A DNA stretch of 64,000 bases from Bugula neritina (lineage: Eukaryota > Animalia > Bryozoa), in assembly GCA_964035545.1 (NCBI GenBank), contig OZ037766.1:14188722-14252721 (forward strand). The letters run 5' to 3'. Under the pieces are notes generated by a model, which was not told where the DNA came from, ran no database searches, and worked only from the letters and a program-made list of their open reading frames with translations. A program made the translations under genes and the position numbers. Below are positions 42,196-64,000 of the stretch, piece by piece; position 1 is the first letter of the stretch; each line of letters opens with the position of its first letter.

Positions 42196-45100
42196 CTTCC
42201 TAATCAAGCAGTAGATGCAAAAAGGCAATAAAAATACGCATATCGTTTGCAATAAAGGAATACTAAAATAAATAATATCGCTTAGTACCTCCATTTTGTT
42301 TAATTCAATTAATCTATAAATTATGGCAATAGTTTGATTGTTGGGAAGAATGTTTACCATATTAGGAAATTCACTGTTTTATTGTTGCAATTGACCTCTA
42401 CGCATATTTTGGTAAATCTTACTGTTTACAATACAATGATTGTTGCAATTGTTTAGGATATTGTTTTGTTTTTACATTAACTGAGAAGTTGTGTTCTCTA
42501 AATGTTATGTTGCCCAATGCTTAACTTTATGCGTTCATAAAGAGGAGTGTATTTTATTAAAAGTGTGTTGAATTCGCCTTTAAAGTCTGAGCCTTAATAG
42601 GATATATAAATAAGATATTTGCTATATATTCACAACTATTTGGCAAGAATGTGCACTAACAATTTTGTATAATGGCTTGCCAATACAATAACATACTATA
42701 AAGTCATTAGTCCTATATGAAGAGTTCCATTTCAAAATGGGACACATCCACTTTGTGCAATTGTAGATAAACACACTTTAAAGTTTTAAGCAAAATTTCA
42801 TGTTAAAATCTAAAACTTTTTTGTAATTTATATCTATGTTGTAACAGTAAACTTTTTAGTTCATGCTAAAAGATGTAACATTTTAACTGGTGCTTCTGTA
42901 GGCAAAGACATTTTCATGTTTTGTTTCAAAAGGGAACATATCTCTGGGTATGTACCACTTTGCTACAAATGAAGAAGTTGAGTGTGCAATAGATTAACTA
43001 TTTTTTTACAAAAAACAAATAAAACTAAAAGGATACAAGATTTAAAAGTTGAAATCAAAAAAATTAAATGGTATTCGGTATTAAAAGGTGTGTCAGTACT
43101 TAAGCCTGAGAGCATTCATTCACACTCTTCTTTAAATTATTAGGCATGGTCATTATGTTTTATTGTTATATAATATTATGTCACATGCTTGTACATGGGT
43201 CACAGCTGCTCCATGCAAAACTTCAAGAGTTGAACTCTGCCATCTTTTTTTTTACCTGATATTCTATATCATATGAAATTAGTAGTACATACTACATAGC
43301 AGTCACAACTGACAAGAAATGCAGTATTATTGATATTTTAATGTTGAGTTCTAAAGTAAACTCAGTAAAACATGCACCATATTGTATAGTAAACTGTGAA
43401 ATGTAAACACGTTTCGGTTTCATACAAACTAGCAATACAAAAATTGTTTCAAATGCAGCAAAATAATGCATAAGTAGTTTCAGGTAAAGTAAATTTGAAA
43501 CATTCATCAAACAAGCATGAAAGAAGCAATTTTTTGAACCAAAATGTATTTAAAAGGTATGTAAGTTCAAGGTTCAGGTGAGGTGAATTTAAGATATTCA
43601 TCAGACAAGCTAACCCCATAATATTCATATTAGAAGTAAAGGGAGATAGTCATAGTAGAGGTAAAGGGGAGATAGTAATATAGGAGGTAAAGAGATGATA
43701 GTAATATTGGAGATAAAGGAAAGATTGAAACTCAAATGCATGTATAATGGAGAAGGAAGCTTCAAGTGTTCCAGTATCCATGCTGACAAGGGCTATATAA
43801 AACTCCATCAACTTTCTGAAAGGTAAATTTAGTACTGTATGCTTTATACTAACTAACCGACACTCATAGCTAACTGACTTTTCCATATAGCTGTGGTATA
43901 TAAATTTTTGATATGACTTATAATGATATATACTAGGATATGATTATATATAATATAGTATAATGTTGCATTGTATTAAATATAGCACTAAATTCATTCA
44001 GGCAGTAAACAAAAGTCAGTAAAAGAGCTGTTTAGTTTTCTTAATAAATAAATAATAATACATATACAAATAAATAATGTGCATGTAACATATATGTCAG
44101 TATATATATATATATATATATTGTCACAAAACTGTAGGTAGCAGTGTGACGAGTTCGAAAAGTCTGGTAGTCAGAAGTATAGAGACAAGTAGCATACAGC
44201 TTGCTAATCCAGTTGAGAGTAATAGAGTTGTGGATATAAGTAGACTTTATTTCTCTAGTAAGATATGCACAGATGAATTTGTAAAAATTAACTCCGAGAA
44301 TGAACTTATAAAAATGAACTGATTCGTAAACACAACTGCCTCAGTATTTATAGTAAACAGAAAAACTCTAGAACATTCTCAAGCATTCCAGTATAGAAGA
44401 TTCTAGTAGGAAACATTCCCCACATGCCAATACTATAGAATGACACTCTTTGCTATGACTCTTGCTTTAGAGTGACACTCGAGCTTATACAGCCTGACTA
44501 GGAATAGGGAGGGTTTTAGACGTGATCAGAGTTTATTTGAGTCACCAAATACTGACCAAATGCTGACCAAACACTGACCGTAAAAACTAAAATAATAATG
44601 ATACAACATAAGGCATAAGGCAAACAAAATGTACGTAATATAATAAGTATGTATGTAAAAGCACTAGCAATGTATATCATAAATTGTAGATAGCAGCATG
44701 AAATAATGATTCAACATAGCATGCAACTACAGCCCATATTATTAAAAACTTTATAACATAAAAATGTAATAACGATATATAATTGTAAATAGATGCTCAT
44801 TACCTCTTTTCTCTCTCTCCTAGTCTACTGTTATGTTGATGCTGTGGCTTTGCACAGTCTTTCAAATAATGCTACTCTTTGGTAGTCTTACATAAATTTA
44901 ATGCTGTCCAAACTGACAGCATGACTCTAACAATATTCCAACTACTAAAAATGGTTTTGTCTTATATACTAATCCATTTGATAAACATTATTGTGTTGTA
45001 AGAGGTATGATTTTACAATTTACTATTTTGGGGTAGGATCTTACTGTTTCAAGAAGTGGGCTGAAGTAAACAAGCATGTGTGACATCACAGCTGATGCAA

Positions 45101-45393
45101 GCATAACTGCTGACTATGAATCATTCTACATGCGTAGCTACTGTTTTGGGGTAGTAATTAAAGAAGCATTAGGTTGACTACTGGCAGCTAGTGGTTATAG
45201 GCTAATTTGAGGTTGATGACATTGTGATTGTGTGTGATTGTACTACAAGTTATAATATCTGTAAACATCCTATTTCGTAACATTACACTCCCCCCTTTAA
45301 TTTCTCTCTATTCACTTAGAGGGAATTAACAATTATATTATTATGCATTTAAAATACTAAGCTAAAATACTAATATAGGTATGCATGCAAAGG

Positions 45394-48300
45394 TTATGGG
45401 GTAAATAGGTAAATTAATTTGTGGATAGGCCTATCTAAGTATGTGGGTGGAGCTAGTCTCACACCTTTACTGTTCAACTCTGTAGTTGCTAGTTGCACCT
45501 TTACCTTACGAATTAAGTCATCTCTAGTTTTATGTGTTTCTATCACTCTAGCTATGGGCCATTCGTTCCTATGTGTATTTTCATTTTTGACAAGTACTAT
45601 GTCACCTTTGCGAATATTTGATTGCGGCTTATGCCACTTTTGCCTTCCCTGAAGATTGTGCAAATACTGTGTTTTCCATTTTGTCCAGAACGAGTTAGCT
45701 AGGCTTTGAACTTGTCTCCATCTTTTATTGGAGTACATATCATTTTGGTCAAATTGTCCTGGTGGCGGTGGTACATGCTTTGATTTCATTGTCAAGAGTT
45801 GATTTGGTGTTAGTGGTGTATTACCATCATCTAGTGTGTTAAGAGGTCTACCATTTACTATGGCCATTGCTTCATAAAAAAATGTTCTCAATGTTGTTGA
45901 GTCTAGCCTGGTTTTATGCATATCTAACATGGAGTTTAGCACATTTCTAACACTTCGTATTTGTCTCTCCCATACACCACCCATATGGCTGGCACTCGGT
46001 ACATTTGTAACAAAGTCTAAATCGTTTTCCCTTGCAAAAGACTGGATTCTTGTTTGGTTTGACTTGAGTTCTTTAAATGCGCCAACAAAATTTGTGCCAC
46101 AGTCTGATCTAAGTTGTCTGATAGGTCCCCTAATAGCAATGAGGCACCGCAGTGCATTTATGAAAGCATCTGTAGTCATGTCATCTAATATTTCTAAGTG
46201 AATTGCCCGTGAGGCCATGCATGTAAATATTAGACCGTATTTCTTTAATTCTGCTCTCCTATCCTTTACAATAAATGGTCCAAACACGTCACATCCTACA
46301 TAGGTAAATGGTGGAGCTGGTTCAACTCTTTCTACTGGCAAGTCTGCCATCTTTTGGGTCATTGGAGCATGTCTTTGTTTTCTACATGTTATGCATTGGT
46401 GAATGTAAGAGCTTACTACTCTTGAGATTCCTATAATGTAATAGCCTGTAGACTTAATTTCACTAATTGTCAAATTCTTTCCTTGATGTGCAACCTTCTC
46501 ATGGCACTGTTTAATCACAAGTTTGGTTACATGTGAGTTGCTTGGTAACATTATTGGGTGCTTTTCATTATAGTTCAACTGTGAATCTCGGAGTCGTCCT
46601 CCTACACGTATCAAGCCATGTTTGTCTAGAAATGGATCTAACTGCGTTAGTTTACTATCTTTACTTACACATTTGTCTTTACTTAGCCTGCAATATTCAT
46701 CTGAAAATGACTCTTTTTGTACCCACTGCATTATTAGATGTTTGGCATCTGTCAAGTCATCAATTGTGAGTCTGGGAGTTATGCTACCTTTATGCTTTAC
46801 CAATCTTTTGACTGCACTTACTGCTTTGATAGCATTTTTTAGGTCTGAGAATCTGCTTAGGTGTTGCTCTAATGAGCACTTAGATTGAGGCTCTGTGTTG
46901 GTTTGTAAACATAATTTGACCTCTGGGTCGGAGGAATCTATCTCATAGTTACTGTCTGTATTTAGCATATGTGATAAATCTGGCTGCCATAAAAATTTTG
47001 GTCCTTGAAACCAGTCTGTACTGAGTAGCTTTTTGATACTGGCACCTCTGGATGCTATATCAGCTGGATTTATGCTTGTGTTGATGTAATTCCATTGTGC
47101 TGCTTTGCTTTTGGATAGAATTTGTTGTACCCTGTTTGCTACAAATGGTTGAAATTTCTTAGTTGTGTTGTGTATGTAGCCCAAGACTACTTTAGAATCA
47201 GTCCAGAAATATTCATTTGTTATAGGCATTGCTAATTCTGTGGTTACTACAGTGGACATTTTTGAGGATAGTACAGCTGCCATTAACTCTGCTCTTGGCA
47301 TTGTTATAGGCTTTATTGATGCAACCCTAGATTTTGCAGAAAGCAATGTGCAGTGTATGTTGTCATTTACATCAACTAGTCTCAGATAAGTGCATTGACC
47401 CAAACCATTGTTACTGGCATCACAAAAGTGATGTAGCTCTGTTAGTCTGATAGTACTTAGGCTTTTAGGTTTCAAGCATCTTGGAATTTTTATTTGAGGC
47501 AGTTCTGCTAATTCTCTTTGCCATGTTACCCAACTGTTTTCTAGTTCTGGTTTTAGTGCATCATCCCAATCAGCTTTGTCTTTGCACATTTCTTGCAAAA
47601 TGTTCTTTCCAATTAAAATAACTGGTGAGAGAAACCCTAAGGGATCAAAAACTGAGGCTATTGTAGACAAAACGCCTCTTCTAGTATGTGGTTTCTCTTT
47701 CATGCTAGCTTTGAACTGAAATTCATCATTTTTTATGCACCAATGAACACCTAGCACACGTTCTACTGGCATATCTGTGTTTAAGTTTAAATCTTTCATT
47801 GTTTCAGCATGTTCAGATTCAGGTATTGTGGCTAGAACTGCTTGGTCATTGGATACAAACTTATGGAGTCTTACATTTCCCTTGGCACATATATCAATTG
47901 CACTCTTGATTACACTGGCTATTTGTTCTTGTGAGTCTAGGCTCATTAGTCCGTCATCTACATAAAAGTCATTTTCAATAAAGTTCACTGCCTGTTTGTC
48001 ACTGTCAGTACCAGAGTCCCCGTGATCTCTAGCCAATGTTCTTAAGCCGTAAGTCGCACAAGCAGGAGATGATTTAGCCCCAAATAAGTGAACTGTCATG
48101 CGGTACTCAACAATGTCAGTCATAGTCTCGTCTTTAAACCAGAGAAATCTAAGGTAGTCTCTATCTGACTCATGTACTTTGAACATGTGAAACATTTTTT
48201 GTATATCACACATTACAGCTATTTGCCCTTTTCTGAATCTATGCAATACTCCTACTAGGTTGTTCATAAAGTCTGGTCCTTGTATCAAGTGATCATTGAG

Positions 48301-51075
48301 ACTTGTGTTCTTAAATTTTGCTGCGCAGTCAAAAACTACTCTAATCTTGTTCTTTTTGGGATGGTACACGCCAAAGTGGGGAATGTACCACTGATGATTG
48401 CTTGCCTCACAAGTTGTAGGTACCAATTCTGCATCGCCATTGTTTATTATGTCTGTCATGAATGCCACGTAATCTGTTCGATATTTCTGGTCTTTAAGCA
48501 TTTTAGTTTTGAGGGTATCAAGTCTGTGCACAGCTAATTGTCTATTGTTTGGTAATTGTGGCTTAGCATTTTTAAACGGCAGTGGCATGCTGTAATAATT
48601 GTCTTCTCTTTGTTTAATATTGTTGCGCATGTTATCTAAAAACTTGGCATCTTCCTGTGACATTTTATGAGTACCAATGTACTTTGTGTCAGTATAATCT
48701 TGCTGTAGGACATTCAAGATATCTGAGCTCAAGTTCTGCTCATGAGCCATAGCCCTATTGCATGTGGGAAATGAGTTTGTTTCATGCTCACCACTATTGC
48801 CTACAATACACCATCCTAGAGGTGTTCTCAGAGCAAAGGGATCATTGATTGCAGGGCCTATTTTAGTTTCAAGTGGTACTAAAGCTCTGGAGTTGTCATA
48901 CCCTATAAGCATTCCTATCTCTATATCTAAACTTTGTGGTATTTCACCTGCAATGCATTTAAGGTGTGGCCATCTATTGGCTATTTCTGGTGTGGGTATG
49001 TGCTGCTTGTTAATTGGAATGCTGTCCCTACTGTAAGTCTTTCCTACTTGTATCTGCTCATGCATGTTAAGTCCTCTAATGGTCAAGTTATTGTACACCT
49101 TACACTTCATTTCCAAGTTGTCAGCTGTCATTGTTGTTAGTTTAAGAGAAACTGGTTTGCTTGTAGCTGTTTGTAGCTTACTAACAACTTGGTTAGTTAC
49201 AAATGTGGTATCTGACATGCTATCTAAGAGTGCATAAGTTAGCACTTCCTCATTAGGGTTATCTACAGTTGCTAGGTATATAGGCACAACCATTGAGCAC
49301 AAGCCATTTGTTTTAGCCACTGTATTGTTGCTGTTAGCTGTTACTTGCTCTGGGTTGTTGCTACTTGCTACTTCATTTACCTGCACTGTTTCTACTTTGG
49401 TATTACTGTTGTTAGCTTGTGTAGCTGGCTGATTGCTTCTATGCGTTACAGTAGGATGCCTTTTTTGGCATATTTTACAAGTAGCTCTATTTCTGCATTC
49501 TTTTGTCATGTGACCTATTCTCAAGCAACCAAAGCATAATCTTTTACTAGCAATGAACTGTTGTTTTTGATCAACTGGTATGCTAGCCAGTTTTCTACAC
49601 TCATGTGTGCTATGATTACTGTAATTGCAGTAGAGGCATAGTTTAGCTTTGTGGTTTTCTGTACTTTTAACACCAGGAGAATGCTCTTCTATGCTAGTAG
49701 CAAAGCTAATGCCCTTGTTGTTGTGCTTTTGAGGCTTATGTGAGTCTATGACCCTTGAACCTGGCAAAGATGAAGTGATTGGATCGTTTAGGATTTCTGC
49801 TTCTGTTTGCACAAACTTTACAAACTGACTAAAACTGGGGTAACTCCTGTGATTTTTCCTATGTGTGGTTACCTCCCGCTTCCATCTGTTTATCATGTTA
49901 TCTGGCAGCTTGGACATGAGCTCAAGATTCTTTTCGCAATCATTTAAAATTCTCAACTCTTTAATATCTTTTGCTGCTATTTCACAATGTGTGAGGAAGT
50001 CAGAAAATGATTGTATCTGCTTATGTTCATGTGGTTTCATTTTGGGCCAAGCATTAATTTTCTTTCGAAATTCATTAGCAACTGTGAATTCTGACCCAAA
50101 TCTTTCTTTCAAAATTATTCTGGCCTTTTGGTATGCTGCTAGTGTATGTAAACTGCATAGGCCACTAATTGCTTCCCTAGCAGGTCCATCAACATGCTGT
50201 TTCAAGACATACATTTTACCATCATCACCTATCATTTTATCCTTGATGTAACTCTCTATGGCATATTCCCAATCTATAAAGTCTAAGGGATTTCCCCTAA
50301 ATATTGGTGGCTTTGGCACATTGTTGGCTTGTATTGCTCTTGTTAAGCATGTGGCCAGGTATTCATTACTGCATGTAGAATGCTGTGATTCATTGTTTTG
50401 CATGCTGCCTATTTGCTGTGGTTGGTTGCTTTGTAAAACTTCTACTGGCCTACTAAAAATAACTTCACTATTGCTTTCTTGATTCACTATTGGTTGGCAA
50501 TTATCTAAATACTCTGCTAGCTCATCTCTAACATCTACATCATGTTCCTCTATTATTTCCTGCCTTATTCTCAGTTGTTTCTGTTTTTCTAACAGCTTAC
50601 TTTTACTTAATTCCAACTGGACATTGGCTAACTGCCTTTCTAGCTCAGCCTGTCTTTGCATGGCTTCCATTTCAATTTCTAATTGTGCAACTTGCAATTT
50701 TGTCTTGGCTGAGATGAATGAGCTTGCTTTTGATGTGTGTTTACTGCTAGCATGTACTGAATGGCTTTCGCCCTTACATTGTTCATGTATACTGTTAATT
50801 TGCTGTGTTAAGTCCTCAAGGTGAGGATGACTTGGAGCTAATGACTTTAGAATTGCTAAGTCAGCATCTGCATCTAACATAATTCGTTGTATGTCATCCC
50901 AAAATTCATTATCATGATTGTCTGTTGCTGCATGCCTACTTCTAAACCTTTTAATTGCACTTGTGACAGATTTAAACCTTTTTTCTACCTCTAATTGTTT
51001 TCCCTTTGTAGATAGGGTTTTGACTCGGCTGCTAATCCTAATGCTATTACTACATGTGGATGTGTCATCATTCAT
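45394..51075 (-). CDS. BEL/Pao Gag-Pol polyprotein
   Basis: Intact 1893 aa: triple zinc knuckle, protease LLDSMS, RT YIPHFGV...RVVFD...FYVDD, RNase H HHFCDAS, integrase H..H/CxxC/DDE, C-terminal RWRQVQ...WPIARV. Confidence 0.96.
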   Translation of the reverse strand: MNDDTSTCSNSIRISSRVKTLSTKGKQLEVEKRFKSVTSAIKRFRSRHAATDNHDNEFWDDIQRIMLDADADLAILKSLAPSHPHLEDLTQQINSIHEQCKGESHSVHASSKHTSKASSFISAKTKLQVAQLEIEMEAMQRQAELERQLANVQLELSKSKLLEKQKQLRIRQEIIEEHDVDVRDELAEYLDNCQPIVNQESNSEVIFSRPVEVLQSNQPQQIGSMQNNESQHSTCSNEYLATCLTRAIQANNVPKPPIFRGNPLDFIDWEYAIESYIKDKMIGDDGKMYVLKQHVDGPAREAISGLCSLHTLAAYQKARIILKERFGSEFTVANEFRKKINAWPKMKPHEHKQIQSFSDFLTHCEIAAKDIKELRILNDCEKNLELMSKLPDNMINRWKREVTTHRKNHRSYPSFSQFVKFVQTEAEILNDPITSSLPGSRVIDSHKPQKHNNKGISFATSIEEHSPGVKSTENHKAKLCLYCNYSNHSTHECRKLASIPVDQKQQFIASKRLCFGCLRIGHMTKECRNRATCKICQKRHPTVTHRSNQPATQANNSNTKVETVQVNEVASSNNPEQVTANSNNTVAKTNGLCSMVVPIYLATVDNPNEEVLTYALLDSMSDTTFVTNQVVSKLQTATSKPVSLKLTTMTADNLEMKCKVYNNLTIRGLNMHEQIQVGKTYSRDSIPINKQHIPTPEIANRWPHLKCIAGEIPQSLDIEIGMLIGYDNSRALVPLETKIGPAINDPFALRTPLGWCIVGNSGEHETNSFPTCNRAMAHEQNLSSDILNVLQQDYTDTKYIGTHKMSQEDAKFLDNMRNNIKQREDNYYSMPLPFKNAKPQLPNNRQLAVHRLDTLKTKMLKDQKYRTDYVAFMTDIINNGDAELVPTTCEASNHQWYIPHFGVYHPKKNKIRVVFDCAAKFKNTSLNDHLIQGPDFMNNLVGVLHRFRKGQIAVMCDIQKMFHMFKVHESDRDYLRFLWFKDETMTDIVEYRMTVHLFGAKSSPACATYGLRTLARDHGDSGTDSDKQAVNFIENDFYVDDGLMSLDSQEQIASVIKSAIDICAKGNVRLHKFVSNDQAVLATIPESEHAETMKDLNLNTDMPVERVLGVHWCIKNDEFQFKASMKEKPHTRRGVLSTIASVFDPLGFLSPVILIGKNILQEMCKDKADWDDALKPELENSWVTWQRELAELPQIKIPRCLKPKSLSTIRLTELHHFCDASNNGLGQCTYLRLVDVNDNIHCTLLSAKSRVASIKPITMPRAELMAAVLSSKMSTVVTTELAMPITNEYFWTDSKVVLGYIHNTTKKFQPFVANRVQQILSKSKAAQWNYINTSINPADIASRGASIKKLLSTDWFQGPKFLWQPDLSHMLNTDSNYEIDSSDPEVKLCLQTNTEPQSKCSLEQHLSRFSDLKNAIKAVSAVKRLVKHKGSITPRLTIDDLTDAKHLIMQWVQKESFSDEYCRLSKDKCVSKDSKLTQLDPFLDKHGLIRVGGRLRDSQLNYNEKHPIMLPSNSHVTKLVIKQCHEKVAHQGKNLTISEIKSTGYYIIGISRVVSSYIHQCITCRKQRHAPMTQKMADLPVERVEPAPPFTYVGCDVFGPFIVKDRRAELKKYGLIFTCMASRAIHLEILDDMTTDAFINALRCLIAIRGPIRQLRSDCGTNFVGAFKELKSNQTRIQSFARENDLDFVTNVPSASHMGGVWERQIRSVRNVLNSMLDMHKTRLDSTTLRTFFYEAMAIVNGRPLNTLDDGNTPLTPNQLLTMKSKHVPPPPGQFDQNDMYSNKRWRQVQSLANSFWTKWKTQYLHNLQGRQKWHKPQSNIRKGDIVLVKNENTHRNEWPIARVIETHKTRDDLIRKVKVQLATTELNSKGVRLAPPTYLDRPIHKLIYLFTP

Positions 51076-51600
51076 TGTTGCTGTGTTAGTAATAGAGACA
51101 GTTAGTGAAAAGCATGCATTTACTTACTACAGCTATTTTATAACCTAAATTCAGTAGGAAAACTAGTTTGAACTAGTTTGTCAAGAACTATCACTAGCCA
51201 ACAGCTAATGCAAACAAACAGCTGATGCCAGCACAGGGATTGCACCCAACTGCCCAATCAGAAACAGGGAGATCCTAATTGATTTTATGGGGCTTTGACA
51301 CAATGTCTATCAAATGGAGTTTCTATAATTACAATACTTCCAAAAAATAAATCTGCATGCAAGCCTAATTATTCTAATAACTTTCCATTCAACTATTTCC
51401 TTTATAATTATGTCACTTATATGTGAAGGTGCGGGTTATATGGTAATCTCTCACCAATCTGCTGATTCCAGGTCACCTTTGTATGTAGTTGAGAGTAGTT
51501 GAGAATAATCCTGATAAATGTTAGTAATGTTTATATAGTTGAGGTGGGTAGAAGTGAGGTTCTCTTTGTGGTCGTCTTATGTTTGTCGACTTCTTTTGTT

Positions 51601-51729
51601 GGACTTGAGATGGAGCTTTTTCTCCCGGACTTGAGTAAGAGTTTTTACTCCCGCACTTTGAGAAAGAGTTTTTACTCCCGGACTTTGAGAAAGAGTTTTT
51701 ACTCCCGGACTTTGAGAAAGAGTTTTTAC
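51601..51729 (-). repeat. 27-bp tandem repeat at the PBS position of the BEL element
   Basis: Minus-strand unit GTAAAAACTCTTTCTCAAAGTCCGGGA; the 9-mer occurs at 51721, 51694, 51667 and 51640, with a degenerate fifth copy. Confidence 0.92.
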
Positions 51730-52874
51730 TATAGAATGACACTCTTTGCTATGACTCTTGCTTTAGAGTGACACTCTAGCTTATACAGCCTGACTAGGAA
51801 TAGGGAGGGTTTTAGACGTGATCAGAGTTTATTTGAGTCACCAAATACTGACCAAATGCTGACCAAACACTGACCGTAAAAACTAAAATAATAATGATAC
51901 AACATAAGGCATAAGGCAAACAAAATGTACGTAATATAATAAGTATGTATGTAAAAGCACTAGCAATGTATATCATAAATTGTAGATAGCAGCATGAAAT
52001 AATGATTCAACATAGCATGCAACTACAGCCCATATTATTAAAAACTTTATAACATAAAAATGTAATAACGATATATAATTGTAAATAGATGCTCATTACC
52101 TCTTTTCTCTCTCTCCTAGTCTACTGTTATGTTGATGCTGTGGCTTTGCACAGTCTTTCAAATAATGCTACTCTTTGGTAGTCTTACATAAATTTAATGC
52201 TGTCCAAACTGACAGCATGACTCTAACAATATTCCAACTACTAAAAATGGTTTTGTCTTATATACTAATCCATTTGATAAACATTATTGTGTTGTAAGAG
52301 GTATGATTTTACAATTTACTATTTTGGGGTAGGATCTTACTGTTTCAAGAAGTGGGCTGAAGTAAACAAGCATGTGTGACATCACAGCTGATGCAAGCAT
52401 AACTGCTGACTATGAATCATTCTACATGCGTAGCTACTGTTTTGGGGTAGTAATTAAAGAAGCATTAGGTTGACTACTGGCAGCTAGTGGTTATAGGCTA
52501 ATTTGAGGTTGATGACATTGTGATTGTGTGTGATTGTACTACAAGTTATAATATCTGTAAACATCCTATTTCGTAACATTACAAATACTATTTATAGAAA
52601 CTCAAAACAAAACAAAACATTGGAATTTCCATGGTTATTTCGCAATTATTGCGCAATACCTTGTTTACATTGCTGGGCAGTAGTTAACATGACCAACCAA
52701 AACAGTAACAATGAACAATGACCCATCTCTTTGATTAGTCTAGAATATTTATGAACATTCCTGTATAATCATTAGGAAAAACCCGATAAGTCTATTTATA
52801 GGTATATGTACACTCAGAATTTGTGACAACCCCCCATTCTAAGAGAAATTATCTTGATCATTTCTCCTAACTAC

Positions 52875-57311: not shown

Positions 57312-57955
57312 AATGTCTCAACAACTGTTAATTAATCCTGTGTATACTCACGTTGTAACTAATAACTTCCCTGTGTGCGACTGAGACTTCCCGGAGCAGC
57401 CCCCAATTGTCACAAAACTGTAGGTAGCAGTGTGACGAGTTCGAAAAGTCTGGTAGTCAGAAGTATAGAGACAAGTAGCATACAGCTTGCTAATCCAGTT
57501 GAGAGTAATAGAGTTGTGGATATAAGTAGACTTTATTTCTCTAGTAAGATATGCACAGATGAATTTGTAAAAATTAACTCCGAGAATGAACTTATAAAAA
57601 TGAACTGATTCGTAAACACAACTGCCTCAGTATTTATAGTAAACAGAAAAACTCTAGAACATTCTCAAGCATTCCAGTATAGAAGATTCTAGTAGGAAAC
57701 ATTCCCCACATGCCAATACTATTTATAGAAACTCAAAACAAAACAAAACATTGGAATTTCCATGGTTATTTCGCAATTATTGCGCAATACCTTGTTTACA
57801 TTGCTGGGCAGTAGTTAACATGACCAACCAAAACAGTAACAATGAACAATGACCCATCTCTTTGATTAGTCTAGAATATTTATGAACATTCCTGTATAAT
57901 CATTAGGAAAAACCCGATAAGTCTATTTATAGGTATATGTACACTCAGAATTTGT

Positions 57956-57959
<4 letters not shown>

Positions 57960-57996
<37 letters not shown>

Positions 57997-58122
57997 TGAC
58001 ATATATAGCACTAAATTCATTCAGGCAGTAAACAAAAGTCAGTAAAAGAGCTGTTTAGTTTTCTTAATAAATAAATAATAATACATATACAAATAAATAA
58101 TGTGCATGTAACATATATGTCA

Positions 58123-58196
<74 letters not shown>

Positions 58197-58322
58197 TGAC
58201 ATATATGTTACATGCACATTATTTATTTGTATATGTATTATTATTTATTTATTAAGAAAACTAAACAGCTCTTTTACTGACTTTTGTTTACTGCCTGAAT
58301 GAATTTAGTGCTATATATGTCA

Positions 58323-58357
<35 letters not shown>
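57960..58357. repeat. Perfect palindrome: two inverted 128-bp units with CTGACATATAT termini, separated and flanked by (TA)n
   Basis: 57996-58123 is the reverse complement of 58196-58323; a direct copy lacking the left terminus lies at ~43980-44100. Confidence 0.92.
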
Positions 58358-58364
<7 letters not shown>

Positions 58365-58743
58365 AAAATATATTCATGTAAAATGCATTACAGATAGTGC
58401 ATGCATGCAGCCCTAAATCATGAATTTCATATTATATCTCTATATGCAGTATATTAACAAGAAATAATTGTCTGCTATTGTTTATATTATAAGAGACATT
58501 AAGGCGCAAAATAGTGTTGATAGTCCCTTAGCTACACCCTAGTGAATGGTTTATAACAGATGCTAAACTCATGGGTAAAGCGTAGCTACTCATGTTCTTT
58601 ATGATAGTCTCCCAGCCTGCCTACAAGAAAGTTATCTGTCATATCAGTTGTTTCAGTTTTGCTATAAGCAGTGTGATGCATTGTGCTGATTCCGGGCTTT
58701 ACAAATAATCTGGGCCATGACTGATGAAATATTCTGATAAAGT

Positions 58744-61700
58744 ATGGATGACCGTATAATAGCTCTGGCAGATGCTATTAATTCAGCAGCTCCGGGTAAG
58801 TTATTTTTTCAACTATTCACTTAAATACATTTGCAGTTCTACATTAAAGTCTGTTGTAATCATTTAAAACACATATATCATTTAAAGTCCCTCATAAATA
58901 AATCATTGCTTTATTTTATTTTATTACAAAGTTCCAAACATATTTGTAATATAATCTTTCCATACTTCAACTAAAAGGTACATGTATAGTATGGTTTTGT
59001 GTTTTACTTTAAAGCACCAATCTCTATTTAATGTTGACTAACCAAGTAATAAAGTATGTAAAATCAGTGAGCTATTTAATGAGAATAAGTCTGGTATGAT
59101 TGCTAGCTGGAGCACAATCTGTAGTAAGATACAATTTGAGAACACTTTCCCCTACTCTGCCGTCCCAAAGTAAAATAGTTCCGTATATAAAGCTGACAAA
59201 AAACTATGAAAGAAAGTGGCACAGAGCCATGAGAAAGGCTAAAATAGTGAATATGTTGATGAGAATGGGCAGAGATCGGGTGAAGAGGAGAGAGAGTGAT
59301 GAAAAACTTCACCTTGAGGTACGTATGCTGTGCTATAACAGGGATAGCAAGATGCTATAATGTATACTATATACTGTGCTATAACAGGGATAGCAAGATG
59401 CTATAATGTATACTATATGCTATGCTATAACAGGGATAGCAAGATGCTATAATGTATACTATATACTGTGATATAACAAAGATAGCAAGATGCTATGATG
59501 TATACTATATACTGTGCTATAACAGGGATAGCAAGATGCTATGAGGTACGTATACTGTGCTATAACAAAGATAGCAAGATGCTATGATGTATACTATATG
59601 CTATGCTATAACAGGGATAGCAAGATGCTATAATGTATACTATATACTGTGCTATAACAAAGATAGCAAGATGCTATGATGTATACTATATGCTATGCTA
59701 TAACATGGATAGCAAGATGCTATAATGTATACTATATACTGTGCTATAACAGGGATAGCAAGATGCTATGATGTATACTATATGCTATGCTATAACATGG
59801 ATAGCAAGATGATTTAATGTATCCTATATGCTATGCTATAATTTAAATAGCAAAATGTTATAATGTATAGTGTATACTGTGTTATATACTCTCTACAAAT
59901 GTTGAATGTTGAATAATAATTCTATAGGTAAAGTTGGATACGGTGAATAAACAAAAGGAAAAACAAATGGAGGACAAAACCTGTGAAAATTCTACCAGTC
60001 TCTTACAAGAATGTGACATTAGGTATAAATTATATGAATCGGTTCGCTAACTGGTTAGCAAAGTATTAAAGCTAAACTAATGATATATATAATTGAAATA
60101 CAGGCAACATTTAACTCCACCATACTAAGCCTCCAGCCCTATGCTTTTACAGAAACAAGACAATTGAAAAATGTTCAAAAGACAAGCCATGTGCCGATCA
60201 GCAAGTAGAAGAGAGTGTCCATGTCAGTGGCAGCGATGGAGCAGATGAGGTTGTGAATGCTGTTGCTATACAGGTTGGATACAGACTGTATTCTTTTAAA
60301 TTCATATTTATAAATGTGGCTGGCAGGTAATGAATTTAATATGGCTCTGTGCAATAAAATACATTATCATAGTTATGGGCTGTTATATTGTAATAATGCT
60401 AGCCACAAAACAAAGCCTCTATAATTATGCCAAAATTTCTTGCATAATTTTGCTCTTTTACAAAATTATTACTGTAGATGCCGTAAGAAAAAAAGTTTTG
60501 CCGCTATATACTTATATAGATGTATTTAATATGTTCGGAGTGGCTTAGAACGTATTTTATGTTTAGTTAAATAACAATTATTTTAGACAGACATTGTGCC
60601 TGTCCCTCCATTGAATGTACTCAAACAAAAGCCAAGGAAGAAAAAGTCAAGATCTTTGCAAGTTGCCATGACAAATGGCCACCTAGACCTGGCTACTCTT
60701 CGTCAGCTGGAGATAACGTACGGTTGTTGATTTATATATTAAATATTATGTTTATTGATTTGTTTCTTTCAGCTGCGTCCTTGGATATGATTGGTTAGTT
60801 TTATCAGTTAGAGAATAGCTTCTTGAGTAAACAAATTATTATAATATAATTTATTCAGGTCTAACAGCAATAATAAAGAAAGTAAAGGGAAGGGAGCACA
60901 GGTGACAAATAAAAGAAAGAAGATGCTGTCAATTACCAAAAGAAAGCTGAAAGAAAATGAAAGCAGTGAGTCAATGCATAACATTAAATTATTTTTATTA
61001 GAATTTTCCCTAATATTCTTACAATAGACTGTATATACATATAAGGAATTTTCATTTCTTTAATATTTTCAGCATCAAATGTTGAAAAAAAAATCAAGTT
61101 TTTAGCATACATTTTGATTTGTCAAACAGTTTCCTGCAAAAAAGAATACCATGACATTTGAATATTGAAAATAGCTGCATGCAGTTTTTCACTATGTACT
61201 ATGACTTTAAATCTAGGTTGAAGTTAGTTTCTTTGGCCACATTTTCTTCCAAATAGTTTGAAAGTTTTTACAATACAACTTATTTATAAATTACAACAAC
61301 CACTTTTAAGAGCTTCATTTCAACAAATATTTGATCACTTAATAGGTTTTCTCATGCAAGAAATGTATTTGCCTTACATTAGAAGGATGATGGCAAATTT
61401 TTTACCTATGATATTAGTTGCTCAGTTAATATATGCATCGCTACAGTTGCTACAATTATTTCTGAATGTCTAATCATAAGCTTTTTTATTAATTACAATA
61501 ATTTGAAGTATAAGCATAAAAAGTTAGATCAATATGCTTATAATCATTAAAACCACCAAATCAAATTTAATATTTATTTATCTGTCATGAAAGCTTAAAT
61601 GGAACAATATTAATTGGCAGAAATGTTCTTATGTGGTATATCAATAGCTTCCTTCTATAGCCACTAGAGTTTAGTGCTGAAAATAAACCAACTGAAATAA

Positions 61701-62365
61701 AACTGATTATCAAAACAAGATTACATGATGATAATGTCTTATAATGTGCAGGAAAAGGGAAAATAAAACTTAGTACAGGTGGAGCATGCAACTTTTGGCA
61801 GTGTTTTTTCTTTTTATGATTAGTAGAACTTTTGGATTCCTTACTCGCTCTGAAACAATTAGAATTTGTTGATTAAATCTTACCTAATTTACTTTATGCA
61901 CTACAAGAACAATTCTTGAAAGTGCCATGCTTAATATCATTCATACCGACTTGATGCTTTTCAGCATGCAAAGATAGACCTACAAACATACAAAGATCAA
62001 AATTAGAACCAGGACATAAATTTGTTGAATTAACACAAAACAGAAAAGGTGACAACAAGCCTATATATAGAAAGAACTTAGCTAGTAGAAAGACCAAGTA
62101 TAGACAGAAGTCAGAACTTCTGACAAACAAAGTAAAAGATAAACAGCTGAGCCAATCAGGAACCAGAAAGAACAAAGCTGGAAAGTCTAGGTATTTCTAT
62201 GTGTGCGTATGTTTAAATATAGTGGTGTTTGTGTATCCGCTAATTGTAAAATGCTTAATAATATGCAAGTACTAGAGCAAGGTCAAATATAGTGACAACT
62301 GGTATTTCAAAAAGCTAGTCAGATTTAGCGATAAAACATTCTATTACCCTTGTAGAATATTTTAT

Positions 62366-62451
<86 letters not shown>

Positions 62452-62452
62452 C

Positions 62453-62512
<60 letters not shown>

Positions 62513-62515
62513 ATA

Positions 62516-62590
<75 letters not shown>

Positions 62591-64000
62591 TCATGCAGTT
62601 GTAATTAAAGCAGTTCTTTATTCTTGCAGAAATTCTAAAGTGCTTCGTAAAGATACCTGCAGTGCCAAAAAGAAACAAGGTAGTGATAAAATCTATATAG
62701 TTCTACCACTTAAAGCTCTATAGTCTATTTCTTACAATCAGTTACAGTTTGCATTGAATATTTTGTTTATGTATTTTCTAATGGTTTAAGTAGAGGGAGT
62801 AATGAACATTGCCCCGCCTACCAAATCATGTTTCAGTACTCAAAGGGCAAAGAGTTTATAAGCCAAAATCTTCCAGCAGCTCGAAAGATGGACAAAACAT
62901 TGAAGGGTGCTCTCAGGCCAAACCTAAAAGTTCTGAATCTAAAACTAAACCCGGTAAAAACTAATCCTAGTTTAGATATAGGTTAACTTACTAAAAATTT
63001 TATTGTGATTAGCAAAAAGTAAAAGCAATTTTTTAAAATTATTTTCATCTTTTGGCTATTTTCAAGTTTATTTGCATTTTCTTTTTTTCTCAAGGTGCTG
63101 CGGCTAGTAAGAAAACATCTCATGAGCCTAAAAGGTTAGTACTATCATAAAAAAGGCCAAATCTGTAAGAGATGATTTTCAACTGCACTACTTATGTATA
63201 CTATCCCATGGCATATTATATATTTTAATGAAACGGTTTATCCGCAGAGATCAAAGTGCGCCAAGCAAGCCAACTGAGGTAAAGGGCCGGCCGGATAAAA
63301 AGAAAAATGCTCCCAACACTACTACTCGTCCGAAAAATACCAACACTGAAGCCACATTGTCTGTAGCCAAAGGAACTCCTGTACTATCAAACAGTCAAAC
63401 TTCATCTAATTCCAGAAGTAATAAAACACTGGAAGCACCTCTTGCAAAATCTTTGCAGCAAAAACCAGTAGAATTATCAATAAAAAGTAGGTTTTCAATA
63501 GCTCATTCTTTTGTTTTTCTCTGTTTAGTTGGCTATCAATTTGCCAACAAACCAATAATTTTTTGTGTGAATTTTTAAAATGTCAAATTTGTCCCTAAAA
63601 TGGAACATTTTTAAGAAACTCTATAATTTTTTTATAAAGGTAACACACCATCTTGTAAAGAGCAAACTGACACTAAAAGTCAAGTGGAAGAAATGAAAAA
63701 AGCAGAAGAAGGGATAATTTCTCCTGTTATGCAATCCATAATTAAAGAAGACAACTCTGGTGAGTGCTCAATATTTCCTATAACCTCCTGTACTATTGTT
63801 TGACTTTTATATATGTGAGAGTAACAAGTAAACTTCTAAATAAGGCAATCTATAAATTAGCATTATTTGATTATTTCAATAGATAAAACTGCAGCTGCTA
63901 TGAAGAATGAAGAACTATCTGCTAAAAGTAAGTTACTTTCTACATTTTACATTACAGTTTGCTGAGTTTTATATTTGTGATTCAATGAGAAACCTAATTC
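58744..64000 (+). CDS. Unknown multi-exon Lys/Ser-rich protein, continues beyond the window
   Basis: [17 protein letters not shown] (donor ~58796) splices in phase to [13 protein letters not shown]...KLHLE (~59107-59318); further short GT-AG exons follow to the window end; no recognisable domain. Confidence 0.55.
59315..59885 (+). repeat. Intronic 46-bp minisatellite, about 12 units
   Basis: Unit ~TGTGCTATAACAGGGATAGCAAGATGCTATAATGTATACTATATAC; ATAAC recurs at 59335, 59381 and 59427. Confidence 0.93.
62368..62589. repeat. (TA)n microsatellite with rare interruptions
   Basis: Directly visible. Confidence 0.97.

Follow-up and report, generated by a model that had tools for sequence, protein, structure and literature searches.

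A BEL/Pao retrotransposon of the bryozoan Bugula neritina that probably primes reverse transcription with its own spliced RNA

To our knowledge, Tf1-type Gypsy elements are the only ones in which self-priming of reverse transcription has been shown. Tf1, Tf2, and Tj1, which are Ty3/Gypsy chromoviruses of fission yeasts, carry out self-primed reverse transcription (PMC4600332). In Tf1 and Tj1, a 5' part of the RNA pairs with the primer-binding site (PBS); cleavage where the duplex ends then yields the primer that is extended (PMC4600332). Here, we analyzed a stretch of 64,000 nucleotides from Bugula neritina (contig OZ037766.1, positions 14,188,722 to 14,252,721; hereafter the window), whose minus strand carries a complete and intact LTR retrotransposon of the BEL/Pao superfamily (52583..44434). 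Its sequence makes it likely that the element primes minus-strand DNA with its own RNA, in a Tf1-like manner that depends on splicing and uses no tRNA.

Like Tf1, Tf2, and Tj1, the Bugula element appears to have no tRNA primer, as no tRNA-complementary PBS was found with the 35 sampled tRNAs, and the PBS after U5 is predicted to pair with its own 5' mRNA in a duplex of about 10-13 bp, at the end of which a cut would be needed to provide a 3' OH. It differs in belonging to BEL/Pao and in the position of the complementary segment, which, according to indirect RNA evidence, is apparently not formed by the very first bases of the mRNA but lies about 135 nt into the RNA; in the DNA it is split by an intron. 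The Gypsy-type pol and the chromodomain integrase of the Tf1/sushi lineage are also missing, and the resemblance is one of mechanism only. Of the Tf1-like self-priming proposed in the initial annotation, the tRNA-independent and covarying pairing with the element's own RNA was retained, but the anatomy proposed for it was not. In tRNA-primed LTR elements and retroviruses, the PBS begins with TGG and is complementary to a tRNA 3' end. With them, the element shares a PBS next to U5, a polypurine tract (PPT), the layout of TATA box, AATAAA, and U5, and a 5-bp target site duplication (TSD), but it has no TGG in the post-LTR leader that was read and no match among the sampled tRNAs, and its PBS is family-specific and tracks the LTR. 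Retroviruses of the HTLV/BLV type contain a splice donor in R. The Bugula element likewise has a splice site inside R, but here both donor and acceptor are found in R and their junction matches the PBS.

The single 1893-aa ORF had Pfam matches to Peptidase_A17 (Pao; 5.8e-48), DUF5641 (1.1e-27), Integrase_H2C2, and DUF1759. The element was assigned to BEL/Pao because this one gag-pol unit between the LTRs carries the Pao peptidase region, DUF1759, the integrase zinc domain, and DUF5641; its LTRs are flanked by a short TSD, and a PPT precedes the 3' LTR (Table 1). An exact-protein look-up of the ORF returned no record. The closest proteins were those of the bryozoan Watersipora (60% identity), followed by those of fish, echinoderms, a hemichordate, a snail, and a sea anemone (about 50-54% identity), and the homologues had an identical domain set. 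Judged by sequence, the BEL/Pao group of this element is spread among marine invertebrates and fish.

Table 1. Features of the BEL/Pao element in window coordinates (slashes mark exon-intron boundaries here and in the text).
Feature	Position	Strand	Basis or remark
TSD GTATT, 5' side	52584..52588	-	3' copy at 44433..44429
5' LTR, 854 nt, TGTAATG...CATTCTATA	51730..52583	-	self-BLAST and 20 solo/3' LTRs
TATA box TATATAAG	52257..52264	-	sequence; kept among fetched loci
LTR exon 1, ends ...GAGAAAAGAG at GT donor	52100..52235 (5' end approximate)	-	donor context, contig depth, TATA box
LTR intron, 217 nt, GTAATG...TCATTATTATTTTAG	51883..52099	-	GT..AG; excised form in DNA and contigs
Start of LTR exon 2, 7 nt, TTTTTAC, proposed 3' end of the self-primer	51876..51882	-	complement of PBS
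11-bp repeats, three, GGTCAGYRTTT, in R	51840..51875	-	number and type differ between copies
Polyadenylation signal AATAAA	51828..51833	-	sequence
PBS GTAAAAACTCTTT, 13 nt complementary to spliced AAAGAG/TTTTTAC	51717..51729	-	sequence, predicted duplex
27-bp tandem array, 4.9 copies	51601..51730	-	period 27; unit 1 is the PBS
gag-pol ORF, single, 1893 aa	45394..51075	-	ORF and Pfam
Polypurine tract AAAGGGGGGAG	45288..45298	-	directly 5' of the 3' LTR
3' LTR	44434..45287	-	self-BLAST; intron copy 44803..44587, TTTTTAC copy 44586..44580

Self-BLAST aligned 52583..51727 with 45287..44431 with 1 mismatch in 857 positions. The real LTR end is 51730, since the flanks diverge directly after the final A in 20 solo or 3' LTRs, and a position set by diverging flanks is independent of any idea about the primer. 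In all 5' copies, the LTR is followed by GTAAAAACTC. At least 45 LTR matches were found in the genome (216 Mb), and in five genomic copies the RT region was 99-100% identical with open frames; these five near-identical regions, together with the near-identical LTRs, indicate that the family is young. From the near-identical LTRs, the several open frames, and an uninterrupted target sequence beside the insertion (57715-57722), the family is probably active.

At a distance of 5 kb, the flanks of the insertion (44120-44436 and 52584-52828) are found again, 100% identical and joined without interruption, in a stretch that includes the empty target site (window 57406-57959). This stretch represents either a local duplication of very recent origin or the second haplotype of a heterozygous insertion, assembled next to the first. 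A tandem array with a 46-bp unit repeated about 16 times and two blocks of 8-10-bp palindromic repeats were found at window positions 59223-59952, 57899-58373, and 62313-62594; the two palindromic blocks adjoin the neighbourhood of the element. The LTRs of this family end in TA (...CTATA), those of the related families whose ends were read mostly in CA (...ACA), and those of two metagenome families in ATA.

The initial annotation had reported GTAAAAACT in place of TGG after the LTR, its exact 9-nt complement AGTTTTTAC inside the LTR at 51884-51876 (AATAAA about 50 nt downstream, LTR end 155 nt away), and four repeats of the 9-mer in a 27-bp array. All of these observations were confirmed, the first with the LTR end fixed by the 20 solo or 3' LTRs and the distance to AATAAA as 51 nt. 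It had further read TTAGTT as an initiator, so that the RNA would start at 51884 and its first 9 nt would act as the primer, and this part had to be revised. The bases 5' of TTTTTAC (TCATTATTATTTTAG) form a pyrimidine tract with AG as in a splice acceptor, and a donor (GAG/GTAATG) lies 217 nt upstream of it. Three genomic LTRs were found without exactly this GT..AG segment of 217 nt. Additionally, contigs from three runs stop at 52100, and their loose ends run on into TTTTTACGGTCAG..., which is the joined form; these RNA-like contigs are assemblies from libraries only guessed to be RNA and carry neither strand nor 5' ends. Most of the intron is without any contig, and coverage gaps in such guessed-RNA libraries prove nothing. 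Among the matches in the fetched loci, the GT donor was present in 38 of 44 and the acceptor in 32 of 38. These results indicate that 52099..51883 is an intron inside R and that TTAG/TT is its 3' splice site and no initiator, with the contigs as a suggestive part of the evidence.

No TATA box lies 25-35 nt before 51884, as the initial annotation had noted, but a canonical TATATAAG is located at 52264-52257, about 380 nt upstream of that position. It was present in 43 of 46 anchor matches among the fetched loci, some of them overlapping, and TATA-like boxes occur at corresponding positions in sister families. The summed contig depth falls about 20-fold from the bin 52162-52232 to the bin 52233-52303. 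TATA box and contig depth thus suggest a transcript start near 52235 rather than at 51884, and the primer segment would accordingly lie about 135 nt into the RNA and span an exon-exon junction instead of comprising the first 9 nt.

Once the intron is removed, AAAGAG adjoins TTTTTAC, and all 13 nt of this junction are perfectly complementary to the 13 bases that follow the LTR, against 9 nt in the unspliced form. Read by eye, the match reaches 17 of 18 with one bulged base. In an anchored test, in which junction matches were counted by index, complements of at least 9 nt from the first post-LTR base were obtained for 0.5% of 400 random internal 16-mers, and complements of 13 nt for none of the 400. 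The duplex begins at the very base where minus-strand synthesis must start, which makes priming its natural reading. In each of the 11 families checked by hand, a G follows the proposed cut, which is only suggestive of RNase H-type cleavage.

As a spliced-type leader, we folded that of a natural intron-less LTR (L039). The helix between junction and PBS was part of its predicted minimum-energy structure, with a pair probability of 0.88, and the first ten pairs had predicted probabilities of 0.83-0.88; the leader as a whole had z = -5.2. When the window's unspliced leader was folded, the predicted probability of the 9-bp helix was at most 0.26, and the minimum-energy structure did not contain it.

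L039 (G000:C5:13965500-13972900) and L038 (G000:C4:9436400-9443700) are independent insertions of a single deletion derivative, as each is flanked by a different 5-bp TSD; in both, the intron is missing from the 5' LTR and kept in the 3' LTR. The two LTRs of each pair share private changes upstream of the intron, but their 11-bp repeat blocks differ. Such unequal LTRs fit no standard scheme of LTR replication, which predicts identical LTRs. They could have arisen by a late template switch onto the spliced 5' RNA end or by later conversion; if the former is true, both loci would be fossil evidence of 5'-spliced RNAs entering reverse transcription.

The initial annotation had regarded the four 9-mers as redundant primer sites. 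GTAAAAACT begins at 51729, 51702, 51675, and 51648, but only the first unit abuts U5, and DNA primed from any of the later units would end with additional bases past U5. The number of units varies from 1 to 4 among family copies, a form three units shorter was seen in RNA-like contigs, and sister families have a single site without an array. We therefore read the array as a polymorphic by-product rather than as redundancy.

Comparison with related elements, which the initial annotation had suggested as a check, showed that the post-LTR bases covary with the LTR junction of their own family. Sister family B of the same genome has 60% aa identity and a similar layout, with an unrelated LTR sequence. 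Its LTR ends in ...CAACA, followed by GTAAAAACTTTAT, and contains ...ATAAAG/GTATTT, 171 nt, and TTGTAG/TTTTTACG in its interior. At the junction of family B (exon 1 end ATAAAG, PBS ...CTTTAT), 13 nt are again perfectly complementary to the bases that follow its LTR. Two positions at the end of exon 1 distinguish the two families, and for each of them the PBS carries the matching change.

Further relatives were elements encoding homologues of the protein, with LTRs defined from pairs of 97-100% identity. Eleven families were checked by hand, from bryozoans, a sea urchin, a sea star, a snail, a fish, a sea anemone, two TARA contigs, and one Logan contig (Table 2). The spliced matches in Watersipora and the two TARA contigs were 10, 10, and 12 nt, and the anchored test gave p <= 0.0175 in each hand-checked family. 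A pyrimidine tract with an AG acceptor was found in all 11. The starts of exon 2 and PBS changed in pairs (TTTTTAC/GTAAAAA, CTCTTAC/GTAAGAG, ATCTCAC/GTGAGAT, and TTGAC/GTCAA, where the slash separates exon 2 from PBS). The duplex starts at the first post-U5 base in every hand-checked family, with a G-U wobble as the first pair in Lytechinus. In five families, splicing adds one bp, and the choice of donor is ambiguous there; in several, the unspliced match is just 5-6 nt. As the PBS changes family by family with the junction of its own LTR, the post-LTR bases track the LTR, often only in its spliced form; the sequence bordering U5 thus pairs with 5' RNA of its own element and covaries with it, in the hand-checked families and in the 14 families of the scan described below.

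Table 2. LTR ends, splice sites, and match lengths in relatives (first column after the name: LTR end/PBS; matches in nt).
Family	LTR end and PBS	Acceptor/exon 2	Exon 1 end and donor	Match to PBS
Pseudorasbora (fish)	ACA/GTAAGAGCTT	CAG/CTCTTACGG	AAG/GT	spliced 10, unspliced 9
Patiria (sea star)	ACA/GTGAGATCTC	CAG/ATCTCACGG	GAG/GT	spliced 10, unspliced 9
Littorina (snail)	ACA/GTAAAACTCG	CAG/TTTTACGA	ACGAG/GT	spliced 10, unspliced 8
Lytechinus (sea urchin)	ACA/G then TGAAACTCG	CAG/TTTCATGG	ACGAG/GT	spliced 9 + G-U pair, unspliced 7
Actinostola (sea anemone)	ACA/GTAAAATATCG	CAG/TTTACG	CGATAT/GT	spliced 11, unspliced 5
Logan contig L088	ACA/GTCAACGACT	CAG/TTGACGG	AGTCG/GT	spliced 10, unspliced 6

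A wide scan of 39 metagenome contigs, anchored on candidate LTR ends, identified junction complements of 10-12 nt in 18 contigs, representing 14 distinct families; the reversed-sequence control gave 5 of 39 and was not clean. The 18 positive contigs had pyrimidine-tract acceptors and GT donors throughout, with donors mostly near the consensus, and G followed the exon-2 segment in 17 of them. When junction complements were scanned without an anchored LTR end, the result was as noisy as the control. We lean towards the view that these families form an ancient, pan-metazoan branch of BEL/Pao in which reverse transcription depends on splicing, the primer existing only after removal of the intron from the 5' R while the 3' copy is retained and inherited.

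In the elements of the sea urchin, sea star, and snail (L079, L081, and L083), the exon 1 ends are near-identical (CCAACGAG or CCCACGAG before GT), and the LTRs are otherwise unalignable. One locus (L031, G000:C4:11716000-11725999) was rejected as a relative with a different post-LTR sequence, being really a solo LTR in a segmental duplication. This solo LTR is diverged (88% identity) and lies within a segment of 1.66 kb that is present twice, with 6.8 kb between the copies; the flank of the LTR was seen among the RNA-like contigs as well, suggestive of read-through or of a unit with many copies.

A host RNA, such as a piece of a tRNA or a Pol III product with a U-rich end, might instead prime at GTAAAAACTC..., and the match to the LTR would then be incidental. 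Some LTR elements do prime with internal tRNA fragments, as copia does, and our tRNA sample comprised 35 distinct sequences. Within this incomplete sample, taken from 30 genomic loci, the best PBS complement was 6 nt in the comparison with host tRNAs that the initial annotation had suggested, and no TGG was found in the post-LTR leader that was read; a tRNA primer was rejected on these grounds. ARAGORN found no tRNA within the 64-kb window, and Rfam gave no match on LTR and leader. A further search, with up to one mismatch, looked in the whole genome for copies of the 16-mer that would pair with the PBS. The six matches inspected outside the element (one exact and five with one mismatch) lay in no recognisable RNA gene and had no convincing Rfam match; they comprised an exact copy at C2:20042388, a 525-bp satellite on C108, and three single loci. 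The satellite (G000:C108, L041) is a tandem repeat that carries a one-mismatch copy of the 16-mer without an Rfam match, probably by chance. The PBS matches the LTR junction of each family, even for two families in one genome, and such covariation with the LTR is incompatible with a host primer. A host RNA is therefore a very improbable primer and the least probable of the explanations weighed here.

The start proposed at the A of AGTTTTTAC (51884), from which the first 9 nt would pair as in Tf1 with four redundant sites, has in its favour a 9-nt complement that is anchored at the LTR end and kept in nearly all LTR copies, as well as distances to AATAAA and the LTR end that suit the start of R. 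It is nevertheless quite improbable. The acceptor with its pyrimidine tract lies at this very site and recurs in 11 of 11 families, the excised form is found in both genomic LTRs and contigs, and a TATA box 380 nt upstream is followed by a region of high contig depth (52100-52232). Moreover, the complement reaches into exon 1 and covaries there, several families retain only 5-6 nt of unspliced match, and the copy number of the array ranges from 1 to 4. We give slightly more weight to a structural or regulatory function of the pairing between junction and post-LTR bases (packaging, dimerisation, or sensing of the splice state) alongside some other primer, although this is also unlikely. Long-range pairings between U5 and the leader are common in retroelement RNAs, and the stable helix predicted by folding would suit such a function. 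Against it, the duplex starts exactly at the first post-U5 base in the 11 hand-checked families, and the region after the LTR contains no other conserved candidate PBS and no TGG.

Under splicing-dependent self-priming, which we prefer to these explanations, transcription would start about 30 nt past the TATA box, near 52235. The 5' copy of the 217-nt intron within R would be spliced, joining exon 1 (...AAAGAG) to TTTTTAC..., and the 13 nt of the junction would pair with the first 13 bases past U5. As in Tf1, cleavage after ...UAC would next provide a 3' end for extension into U5, while the region upstream of the cut would be restored from the unspliced 3' R. Such re-copying from the 3' R would account for the presence of the intron in about 45 LTRs and its absence from only three, even though the better primer requires splicing. 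The scheme needs the 5' intron to be spliced with the 3' copy kept, or else a primer provided in trans by a second spliced RNA.

The accessible parts of the BEL/Pao literature describe no splicing-dependent self-priming and mention neither PBS nor tRNA, in line with the initial annotation, which knew of no such description for BEL/Pao. The feature is probably a new and conserved variant of self-priming. If this is true, it would explain how reverse transcription starts in a large group of BEL/Pao elements of bryozoans, echinoderms, molluscs, cnidarians, and fish. LTR-annotation tools that seek a PBS by tRNA matches would miss or mis-score such elements. Defences based on tRNA fragments reportedly target the PBS (PMC12853362). 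Elements that offer no tRNA-type PBS would be out of their reach. Furthermore, an intron-split primer would allow the 5' R and the 3' R of a terminally redundant RNA to be distinguished. Splicing would assemble the replication primer and thereby form a new control point, so that only RNA processed by the spliceosome would replicate and no host tRNA would be required.
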